Shown here: piece after piece, positions 41,401-44,400 of the stretch
Layout: each line of letters starts with the position of its first letter
Position numbering within the stretch: position 1 is the stretch's first letter
Source: Bugula neritina
Taxonomy: Eukaryota; Animalia; Bryozoa
DNA length: 64,000 nt
NCBI GenBank assembly: GCA_964035545.1
Contig: OZ037767.1
Coordinates: 1,623,680 to 1,687,679, forward strand
Reading direction: 5' to 3'
Program-made: the position numbers and the translations under genes
Notes under the pieces: generated by a model
Told to the model about the DNA's origin: nothing
Databases searched by the model: none
Seen by the model: only the letters and a program-made list of their open reading frames with translations

Positions 41401-44400
41401 GACTTAGAAATGAGTGAAATAAAATCCACAATATATAGCCAGTAGCCTTTTATTAAAATTCTAGAGTTATAAATAAAGCAAGTTTTATGTAATCAAAAGA
41501 GGTGTTGAAAATAAACAGCATACGGTTTAGTAGTACAGTGTGTTAGGCACCGGATATGATAGCTTTGTCAATAAACTTTAGAAAATCAACTTAAAAGACA
41601 AAGAAGACTTTAGCTAAAGCAATTCAGCACAAAAATTATCGGCATAAAGTTGGCAAAAACACACAACTTTATGTAAAAATGACTGATAACAAAATAAACC
41701 ATAATTTCAATTGCAAAAATGCAATAACAAAATAAGGTATTATGAATAGAAACCAACAGCATTAAACAAAAATGAAGTCAAAAGATTTCATACAGATTTG
41801 TGTCACAGGGTCTTGTTTTGACAGCTTCATAAGAACAAGTGATGCTTTGCTGAGCTTCGGCATTCTGGATTCTGCAGCCTTTTATTTGTGTCCTGATGAC
41901 GTGACATCCTGTGAGCCACTCGAACAAATAGATCATAAATGTTGGTTTGGCCGGTGGGCAGAGTAAATTCTTCTCGGATGGCAGAGACAAAGTGATTGCG
42001 GTGGGCGGTGCTATCGTACAGAGTCGACATCAAAACAATGCAATTCTTAGCTCTTAGAATCATATGGTTGGAGTCATCTTTCTCAGTTACCAGCACATCT
42101 TCCAACTCTCTGTGTTCCACATCACTTCTGCAGAACGAGGACACCGGAGAGAGAGCTTTCTGGCAGGCTTGCACAATTATGAGCTGAAATATAGACCCAT
42201 TCATGTTCAACGAAATTTTTTATATGTATAGACTTTGGTATGTGTTGAAATTTTCATTCCCATTCAAGACACAAATATCTGAGCATTTAAAACTAAATGA
42301 GAGTGCGACTTACCAAAGGTATCATAGCTGGGATAGCCTTCCTTGTCTCATCAATGATCTCTGCGATTTCACCGCGTGAATTATTTTCACCAATCAAATT
42401 ACCTCCGAATCCATGAGACAGCAGACAGACTGATACTACAGAGCACCGGCTGTGAACCTTGTTAGTTCTCTCCACCAACCAGTTGCGCAAATCTCCAAAG
42501 CATTTCCACTCTTTAAGGTCAACAATGAACCCCTTAGACCGCAACACTGCGGCAAGTGTTTCAGCCTCTCCTAAAGCACCTTTTCTTTGTACAGAAGTAT
42601 AGCAAACAAAAGCGTATTTTCTAGCTTTACTCTGAACAGGTGGAATAATGAAATGATCGCTAACTGAGGACATGACTCCAATCACCGCGGTGGACATGGG
42701 GGTATTGCACAAATTTATAAGTAGCCATCGCTTTACGAGTCTTGGGAACCAAAGACAGAGCTCTTTGACTAGTGCTAAATTGTCAGACTTAACCGCCATG
42801 CTTACGATAGCAGAGACCAGCGAGTTCTGTGTACTCTTACACAGGATGGGGCGTACCAGTGAAGGAACATGGGAGCGGATCAGTTGAACCGACTTGACAT
42901 CCCGAGGAGTCTCACCATACACATTTGTTTGTCTCCTCAGCCTTTTCATGACAGCAGAGTCAATGAGTGAATACAGAGTATTAGCAATGTCCACACTAGG
43001 AGTGAGTGAAGCAGCCAAATGTAGCAAATTCTCCCCATGCTTGTCTGTAACTTGACAGACTGTGTTTTTGTTAGTTTCTGACAAAGATGATATTAAACGC
43101 TCAGTCAATCTGCTATTATTATTGAGAAGAGCATATTGTATGGCATTGAGTCCTTTATTACTTGTGTGACCAATCAATTCGTCAAGAGATTCGCTGTGGA
43201 ACTGGTTAAGAGGAAGCAACTGGAAGACTAGGTTCATGTTATCAGATATCACACACTGCTGCAACACATTGCATCCCTTGCTGTCAGTCACACTAATCAA
43301 ATTGATTTGCTTGCATATATCAGTCAACTTGAGAAGCGGAGTTAGAGGGCAGATGCTATCGAGTGGGAGGGCACACTTCGGAAGCTCAGATAACCAGTTG
43401 GCTGAGTTCTTCCATTCATCAGATAGATTAAACAGAAGCGTGAACAATATATCCATATTGTGACATTCTAATGCGTAATGAAGTGAGTTTTTACCTTGGC
43501 AATCTCGATGGAAAATAAGAGTATCAACTGCGGGTTGATGCAACTTGGCAAGTGTTAGTAGATGGGAGACAAACTCCAGTTTGTTGTCGATAACAGCACG
43601 CTGAAGAGAATTCCTTCCATAGACATCTTCTACTGATACCAAATCAATTTGAGTACAAATCTTTCGCAAGGTCTCATAATTACCTCTTCCATCCTCTGTG
43701 TTACACATCATCAGTTGAAGAATATTGAGCCCAATAAAACTGGTCCTAACGAATGACTTATGGCTTATGATGATAACTAACTTCACTCACTGCTATCAGT
43801 ACTACAGGCTGCGTGAATCTAATTTTCACGTTTCTACCCACCTATTGATAGTAAGACTAGAGATAAACTTAACTAATAACAATATGAACAAAAAATACCA
43901 TCACCTCAGATATCCTACTGTAAAACCCCAATACTGCCCTATGATTTGTATTGCAGAAATACAATTTCACAAGAAAATTGGTGGTAGTACATTGCATTGT
44001 AGAGTATTTTAGCTGAAGTATGTTTGAAGTAGATAGCTGACACAAAACTGTCAACATACAGCTAAACCGACAACTCAGTCTTAACTCTAAAGGTTAGGGA
44101 AAACCCCAGCATTAGTAATTAAATTCCCCAAACTTTTAGTTATTACGCAGTGAAACTGCATTCCATCATCAAGTCAGTAACAACCAACTGTAATTGTTGG
44201 CTGTTGTCCTGGCAACTTCAATGAAAGGAATTTCTAGTTACAGACATAGCAGTGTTATGCTTTACTTGGGCTAGTATTGGTGCATGCATAAGAAACTAAC
44301 TCAAAAACCTTCTTTGTATGTCATAAGATTAATTCTGATAGTTTGGAATACAAGCAGGTTACTTATATTATACATATTTCTTATTTATGAAACACTTGAG

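Follow-up and report, generated by a model that had tools for sequence, protein, structure and literature searches.

We analyzed a 64,000-nucleotide stretch of contig OZ037767.1 from the bryozoan Bugula neritina, hereafter the window, and found on its minus strand a two-exon gene that joins an ankyrin-repeat prodomain to a caspase domain in a single 584-residue protein. Sequence comparison and structure prediction suggest that the product is a long-prodomain caspase that probably works as an active, Asp-directed initiator, in which the ankyrin array and the linker behind it may recruit or restrain the zymogen. We lean towards this reading with moderate confidence. Textbook caspase activation runs through death-fold prodomains (CARD or DED).

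Gene structure and transcription

The two minus-strand open reading frames (ORFs) at 42293-43786 and 41827-42210 in the ORF listing of the window are two exons of one gene. The sequence itself holds a phase-0 donor (ccT TTG|gtaagt, 42314|42313) and an acceptor (tttcag|CTC, 42184|42183), both on the minus strand, and the joined exons read ...AMIPL|LIIVQACQK.... The earliest ATG is at 43711 (MMCNTEDG), and the ORF has no in-frame ATG upstream of it. From there exon 1 encodes 466 amino acids (aa) and exon 2 encodes 118 aa. Assembled contigs of four runs, each from a different study, contain the splice junction 42183->42314, where 130 nucleotides (nt) are skipped with CT..AC on the plus strand, and the transcript contigs cover 41438-43768. 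The gene is thus transcribed and spliced as an independent two-exon unit. An earlier note, made from the letters of the window, had proposed one spliced ankyrin-caspase gene of 584 aa with the catalytic His and Cys in different exons, and had named spliced reads over the 42184-42313 intron as a check. All of this is borne out by the GT-AG intron in the sequence, the junction in the four runs, the 466 + 118 aa counted from the ATG at 43711, and the positions of His433 in exon 1 and Cys473 in exon 2. The parts of the gene are as follows.

43712-43768, minus strand: 5' untranslated region (UTR); transcript contigs reach about 43768 (X6 records 17-19)
42314-43711, minus strand: exon 1 coding sequence (CDS), 466 aa, with the ankyrin prodomain, the helical linker and the His-bearing N-terminal caspase half
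43406-43678, minus strand: ankyrin block 1, residues 12-102 (Pfam Ank_2, helices of the AlphaFold2 (AF2) model, family alignment)
43310-43393, minus strand: low-confidence loop, residues 107-134 (AF2 model)
42932-43309, minus strand: ankyrin block 2, residues 135-260 (Pfam Ank_2, Ank_4 and Ank_5; AF2 and Foldseek)
42623-42907, minus strand: helical linker and pre-p20 motif, residues 269-363 (alignments; hhalign to the paralogue L013; predicted local distance difference test (pLDDT) >90)
42314-42622, minus strand: N-terminal half of the caspase p20, residues 364-466, with Arg376 at 42584-42586 and His433 at 42413-42415
42184-42313, minus strand: GT-AG intron, phase 0, 130 nt (sequence; RNA junction in four runs)
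41830-42183, minus strand: exon 2 CDS, 118 aa, with the Cys strand, acidic linker, p10-like half and C-terminus; it holds Gln471, Cys473 (42163-42165) and Arg528 (41998-42000)
42046-42162, minus strand: intersubunit-type linker, residues 474-512, with candidate processing sites Asp487, ELED495 and EKDD503
41827-41829, minus strand: stop codon
41438-41826, minus strand: 3' UTR, at least 390 nt (transcript contigs)

The locus is on chromosome 3 of Bugula neritina, whose assembly tzBugNeri2.1 has 216,009,554 bases (PMC11480708). The ankyrin-caspase gene is nested in an intron of a larger same-strand gene, because contigs of three runs carry a host-gene junction, 40644->44847 (CT..AC, 4,202 nt skipped), that skips the whole gene. 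One could therefore read the two ORFs as alternative exons of this surrounding gene: they share its strand and lie within its intron, and one metatranscriptome contig (X10 record 1) runs unspliced from exon 2 to 40622. However, the three runs splice the host gene cleanly from 44847 to 40644, and the transcript contigs of the caspase gene end near 43768 with no junction to any upstream exon, the upstream host exon included. The unspliced contig is what host pre-mRNA would give. The RNA junctions contradict the host-exon reading, which we consider very improbable and have rejected.

Contigs of two runs (X10 record 2 and X6 record 16) cross the 130-nt intron unspliced, covering window positions 42155-42342. 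They may be pre-mRNA or DNA carry-over. If translated, the retained intron would bring a stop after six codons (VSRTLI*) and give an ankyrin and half-caspase protein without Cys473.

A divided caspase domain behind an ankyrin prodomain

Searched against Pfam one exon at a time, the window protein scores above the cut-off for both of its parts. Exon 1 matches Ank_2 (42.3 bits, cut-off 27.3), and exon 2 matches Peptidase_C14 (PF00656) over profile positions 120-228 (28.9 bits, cut-off 21.4). At the end of exon 1 lies another Peptidase_C14 match, with 13.3 bits over profile positions 15-94. On the profile the exon-2 match follows on from this one, so that the two represent one domain divided by the intron. 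In P0009, a full-length homologue from Watersipora subatra, the same profile matches without a break over positions 16-227 (34.6 bits).

The catalytic residues His433 (LSHG) and Cys473 (QACQK) are both present and conserved in the family, on either side of the intron. The fifth residue of the pentapeptide is Lys, as compared with the Gly of QACxG. In caspases the Asp-binding S1 pocket is formed by Arg179, Gln283 and Arg341 (caspase-1 numbering), and the window protein has Arg376 (QRKG), Gln471 (QAC) and Arg528 (TAHRN) at the aligned positions. A phmmer search placed QRKG and LLSHG on Arg64 and SHG of zebrafish caspase-3 (E 0.038, weak). A profile of the exon-2 family, compared with the p10 chains of effector caspases, put HRN on the SWRN arginine and VQAC on IQAC (E 0.09-0.9); in this alignment the L3 loop after HRN is about five residues shorter than in effector caspases. 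When aligned to caspase-8, the Watersipora homologue keeps R, HG, QACQ and YR in register (E 0.015). The S1 alignments to caspase-3, caspase-8 and the effector p10 chains are weak yet mutually consistent.

Structure prediction points in the same direction. The AF2 model of P0009, made from a 36-row family alignment, has a pLDDT of 82.5 and a predicted template modeling score (pTM) of 0.75. Its top matches in the PDB are procaspase-8 (E 2.3e-6) and caspases 7, 3, 4 and 11, together with ankyrin proteins; for procaspase-8 and caspases 7, 3 and 4 the E-values range from 2e-6 to 1e-4 and the template modeling (TM) scores by target from 0.5 to 0.65. Human and zebrafish caspase-3/-7 and caspase-8 are the best matches in both sequence and structure, and share with the window protein the residues aligned to the S1 arginines, His-Gly, Q-A-C and the C-terminal strand. 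Compared with these solved caspases, to which it is about 15-25% identical, the window protein has an ankyrin prodomain, a Lys for the Gly after QACx and a shorter L3 loop.

The two halves of the domain were also predicted as separate chains. Window residues 348-466 and exon 2 together scored 0.80, compared with 0.01 for the best of three controls, and the mark used here is reached by 51 of 78 solved complexes and by 2 of 108 mismatched pairs. At least 94% of the contacts agree between runs, with a partner pLDDT of at least 63. In the model, the His strand (chain 1 residues 78-90) touches LIIVQACQK (chain 2 residues 1-9), as in caspases. Since caspase p20/p10 structures are well known, the pass speaks for likeness to caspases and not for activity. 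The halves encoded by the two exons are thus predicted to pack as one caspase fold. The intersubunit linker is acidic and Asp-rich (Asp487, ELED495, EKDD503), and the linkers of relatives are also Asp-rich, at differing positions.

About 360 residues lie ahead of the protease domain, and this prodomain is not a death fold. The AF2 model of exon 1 (pLDDT 83.3) shows about 5-6 degenerate helix-pair ankyrin repeats in two blocks (residues 12-102 and 135-260) with a disordered loop between them. Block 1, of about 100 aa, is an N-terminal extension relative to most family members. In a Foldseek search the closest PDB matches of this model were DARPins, the EHMT1 ankyrin domain, ankyrin-1/B/G and gankyrin (E about 1e-7). 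An ordered helical linker follows at residues 269-347, and the first half of the alpha/beta domain takes up residues 364-459. Residues 296-363 have a pLDDT above 90, so that the link between the ankyrin and caspase parts appears as a well-ordered helical segment and not a floppy one. By profile match and by its stacked helix-pair fold, the protein is an ankyrin-repeat protein, and it has the long interaction prodomain of initiator caspases.

These results agree with most of what the earlier note had read from the letters. Its count of about six ankyrin repeats is roughly right, and its full p20/p10 domain is recovered as consecutive profile matches and as a passing two-chain model. The S1-pocket residues that it named align to the caspase positions, albeit weakly. 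The non-Gly fifth residue of its QACQK turns out to be a conserved family trait, and its ELED and EKDD lie in the Asp-rich linker as candidate cleavage sites. Of the checks it had suggested, the Pfam search found both families above the cut-off, and the prediction of dyad geometry brought the His strand into contact with the Cys strand.

A second copy of the gene allowed an estimate of selective constraint. L001, a 7.1-kb metagenome contig from the Joint Genome Institute (JGI), also contains the gene, and there too both frames and the intron are intact. The transcript contigs and L001 are 90-95% identical to the window and carry 33- and 37-nt indels in the 3' UTR relative to the assembly (window 41499-41537 and 41747-41781). 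This divergence and these indels fit a sibling cryptic species of the Bugula neritina complex and not the sequenced individual. Between the window and L001 the synonymous divergence (dS) is 0.167, and the ratio of nonsynonymous to synonymous divergence (dN/dS) is 0.21 overall (p = 1.5e-13); the caspase domain taken by itself has 0.08, the ankyrin part 0.27 and the linker 0.32. The CDS is free of indels, and the intron and 5' flank are 10-11% diverged and contain indels. The gene is under purifying selection, which is strongest in the protease domain. A degraded pseudogene is ruled out by the intact frames in two lineages and by the dN/dS of 0.21.

Within the loop between the two ankyrin blocks, residues 108-114 (window 43370-43390) carry six substitutions in seven residues relative to L001, with no frameshift.

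Relatives and other ankyrin-caspase loci

The ankyrin-caspase gene is single-copy in the genome: searches of its own genome with exon 1 and exon 2 (E <= 1e-3) returned only the gene itself and one unrelated ankyrin ORF. An exhaustive HMMER search of 1.84 billion representatives gave 137 matches. Word-indexed protein searches found only the sibling copy, P0009 and P0013, which reflects a limit of that method and is not evidence of rarity. Most of the HMMER matches span residues 300-466 and stop precisely where the intron lies. The "IPL-VS..." sequence at their ends comes from reading through a GTAAGT donor, and thus the matches are eukaryotic genomic fragments with the same intron. The intron position is also found in L001, L023 and L024, and several of the top matches also bear Ank_2.

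Members of the family are only 20-37% identical overall. Glu382, Trp402, His433 and Gly437 do not vary across 36 sequences, in which Arg376 reaches at least 90% conservation; in the exon-2 set the residues without variation are V, Q, C, Arg528 and Phe531. The fifth residue of the pentapeptide is never Gly: Watersipora has QACQK, and two more relatives with a readable second exon have QACQI and QACQN. Since relatives carry Lys, Ile or Asn there, the Gly-less QACQx is a family trait and not a lesion. Family alignments also show a conserved motif directly before the protease domain, the pre-p20 motif, with the consensus PLSxxQIxxLxPxSxxYIIPxNQ. It is common to L013 and L014, tandem paralogues on chromosome 7 (for L013 by hhalign). 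Judged by its sequence features, namely the common intron position, the Gly-less QACQx loop and the pre-p20 motif, the gene belongs to a distinct family.

Among 20 relatives looked up, the sole named one is P0009, the Watersipora subatra 'uncharacterized protein' XP_067942946.1 (487 aa). This full-length spliced model has ankyrin-like helices, the linker motif and the caspase in the same order as the window protein. It is 25% identical over residues 137-466 and shares QACQK and the aligned Arg, His and Arg. It differs from the window protein in its start, MGQKQS, which is a candidate N-myristoylation signal, in having no counterpart of ankyrin block 1 (about 100 aa), and in a His motif that reads CHG and not SHG.

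An MG start is seen in six of the ten relatives with a readable N-terminus (P0002, P0004, P0006, P0007, P0009 and P0010). Four of these six conform to MGxxxS and so have a candidate N-myristoylation signal, which would suggest anchoring at a membrane. The window protein has no MG start; it begins with MMCNT and has the extra ankyrin block.

By protease domain, the nearest paralogues are L013 (C7:9054500-9060000) and L014 (C7:9079500-9085000), which lie about 25 kb apart. Both have an AHG motif, their open frame runs on long after the His, and the next exon begins with MMIVQSC[T/A]G. No recognizable ankyrin repeats were found in them; frames of 694 and 632 aa without a Pfam match precede the pre-p20 motif.

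The same genome holds other ankyrin-caspase loci. By the coordinates of family-profile matches, at least 14 ankyrin ORFs have a Peptidase_C14 exon 1.5-4 kb downstream of them in the same orientation, where a rough chance expectation is about 0.3 such pairings. In the genome sequence, each of the eight loci inspected (L015-L022) has THG...QAC exons behind a strong ankyrin array (Ank_2 E 1e-28 to 1e-76). These eight loci lie at C2:30.508-30.549, C2:26.764-26.766, C2:31.064-31.067, C2:32.918-32.922, C5:0.3475-0.3496, C6:3.452-3.455, C7:5.539-5.543 and C9:9.320-9.358 Mb. Like the window gene, they carry ankyrin repeats 5' of caspase exons on the same strand. However, their arrays are long and consensus-like (ORFs of 371-982 aa), while the window gene has about 5-6 degenerate repeats, and their THG and QAC share one exon, while in the window gene His and Cys are divided by the intron. 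Exon searches of the genome revealed no significant similarity between the window gene and these canonical loci. By sequence, the window gene appears to stand outside the canonical ankyrin-array caspase expansion.

Several of the canonical loci are in tandem clusters. Genome-wide there are at least 179 exon-level Peptidase_C14 matches, with concentrations on C6, on C7 and at C1 32.8-35.5 Mb. For a genome of 216 Mb, an expansion of caspases on this scale is very large.

Possible functions and relation to known ankyrin caspases

We propose a model for how the protein may work. It would be an active, Asp-directed cysteine protease of the initiator type, in which the ankyrin array and the helical linker would form an interaction module in place of CARD or DED. 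This module could bring the zymogen to a partner or scaffold, or it could hold the zymogen inactive. Activation might then proceed via induced proximity or dimerization, followed by cleavage at Asp487, Asp495 and Asp503 of the linker. The Gly-less QACQK loop and the L3 loop shortened by about five residues suggest a substrate groove shaped unlike that of classical caspases. Ankyrin domains can bind caspases in trans, as a report on the adaptor Caiap describes (PMC5662874). Caiap, a protein of fish and other vertebrates with a CARD and 16 ankyrin repeats, is reported to bind and stabilize an active caspase through its ankyrin array (PMC5662874). There the ankyrin array and the caspase are on separate proteins, with a CARD in addition, and the comparison with the fusion in the window is a functional analogy.

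Several points weigh against this model. Every sequence match to solved caspases is weak (E 0.015-0.09), and exon 2 on its own brought up no caspase when searched against the PDB by phmmer; a match needed a small family profile. Catalysis could be weakened or changed either by the Lys in place of a near-universal Gly or by the shortened L3 loop. The C-terminal half of the P0009 model has a pLDDT of 52-79: MAFFT laid the exon-2 fragments over the N-terminal half, and hence P0009 was folded without alignment depth in that half. The two-chain pass may reflect the model's memory of caspase p20/p10 structures. Finally, the RNA label of the runs is only a guess, although the spliced junction argues for RNA.

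Some of these features could instead mark a catalytically weak or dead pseudo-caspase, a regulator that, like cFLIP, forms heterodimers with other caspases. The conserved Gly is missing from QACQK, the L3 loop is short, the domain is very divergent from solved caspases, and the genome-wide set of at least 179 exon-level caspase matches offers potential partners. However, the family keeps His, Cys and the three S1-aligned residues despite an overall identity of only 20-37%, whereas known pseudo-caspases lose these residues, and the low dN/dS of the domain (0.08) includes the active-site residues. Because the dyad and the S1-aligned residues are all conserved, we regard the pseudo-caspase regulator as a minor rival of low probability.

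The earlier note had suggested a directly fused sensor or a substrate-recruiting module, and it is tempting to speculate that the ankyrin array binds a foreign or danger ligand and switches on the fused caspase as a one-component sensor-protease. In favor of this, ankyrin arrays serve as scaffolds for ligand binding, evolution is faster in the ankyrin part than in the protease (dN/dS 0.27 vs 0.08), many other ankyrin-array caspase loci are found in the genome, and sessile colonial marine animals expand ankyrin-bearing death-machinery proteins (PMC8195603). However, the window gene has neither a second copy nor a close paralogue, its repeats are degenerate and number only about 5-6, purifying selection acts along its whole length, and a relative can be recognized in Watersipora. 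This pattern is easier to reconcile with a conserved partner in the cell than with a variable ligand, and a prodomain for recruitment or regulation fits it better than a fast-evolving sensor does. We consider the sensor-protease fairly unlikely for this gene. The large canonical arrays are better sensor candidates.

The array could also act as an exosite that delivers substrates to a constitutively competent protease without controlling its activation. Substrate recruitment to a catalytic domain is given as a general role of ankyrin domains in the Caiap report (PMC5662874), and in the window protein the two parts are joined by an ordered helical segment (residues 296-363, pLDDT >90). The present evidence fits a role in recruitment and activation equally, however. 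Long-prodomain caspases studied to date, those with CARD or DED, use the prodomain for activation. We therefore hold the exosite to be distinctly unlikely and retain the ankyrin-prodomain initiator as the preferred reading.

The layout itself is already published and is widespread in the same genome. In a 2024 survey that covered 60 genomes of lophotrochozoans, 'ANK caspases' are named and placed as a clade found specifically in parasitic flatworms, sister to the DED caspases (PMC11463336). They were first seen in Schistosoma, with one further case in the annelid Alitta virens, and are proposed to be initiators (PMC11463336). The 60 genomes included no bryozoan (PMC11463336), and we found no published description of ankyrin caspases in bryozoans. 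With an ankyrin prodomain and a caspase in one protein, the window protein fits the ANK caspase layout. As in the flatworm proteins, also from lophotrochozoans, the ankyrin prodomain is N-terminal to the caspase and replaces CARD or DED, a likeness by layout. What sets the bryozoan family apart from the flatworm ANK caspases is a QACQx loop without Gly, the conservation of a pre-p20 motif and an intron position of its own. The ankyrin-caspase layout is thus not new, and the bryozoan gene is an example from a divergent family with a Gly-less loop.

Ankyrin-prodomain caspases are a recently named alternative to death folds and have so far been reported as a peculiarity of parasitic flatworms. 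That a colonial bryozoan with a free-living habit has this layout, in large arrays as well as in a conserved single-copy gene, widens the known taxonomic range. The architecture is known, and no new principle is shown yet. The gene is small, has two exons, and is transcribed and strongly constrained, which makes it a tractable case for the control of a caspase by a repeat scaffold. The conserved loss of an "invariant" active-site Gly is a natural test of the role of that residue.

As a tentative and rather doubtful extension, there may be an ancient caspase lineage peculiar to bryozoans, apart from the flatworm ANK caspases, in which recruitment by CARD or DED gives way to a helical or ankyrin prodomain outside the death folds (often with a candidate N-myristoyl anchor), combined with a Gly-less QACQx and a short L3 loop. 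If so, this would be an independently invented initiator caspase whose substrate preference or regulation is unlike that of classical caspases, and the lineage might be tied to cell death in the colonial life cycle, such as polypide regression and metamorphosis.

The same two Pfam families also occur together in bacteria, in ANK + Peptidase_C14 proteins such as Desti_1504 of Desulfomonile tiedjei and Atlas clusters of 435-449 aa; an example of this bacterial combination is listed in PMC3932732. These are prokaryotic caspase homologues and, as language-model look-alikes only, serve as leads. The ESM Atlas likewise holds Ank + Peptidase_C14 clusters, again as leads only, in bacteria and in eukaryotes (951 aa, mostly arthropod records).

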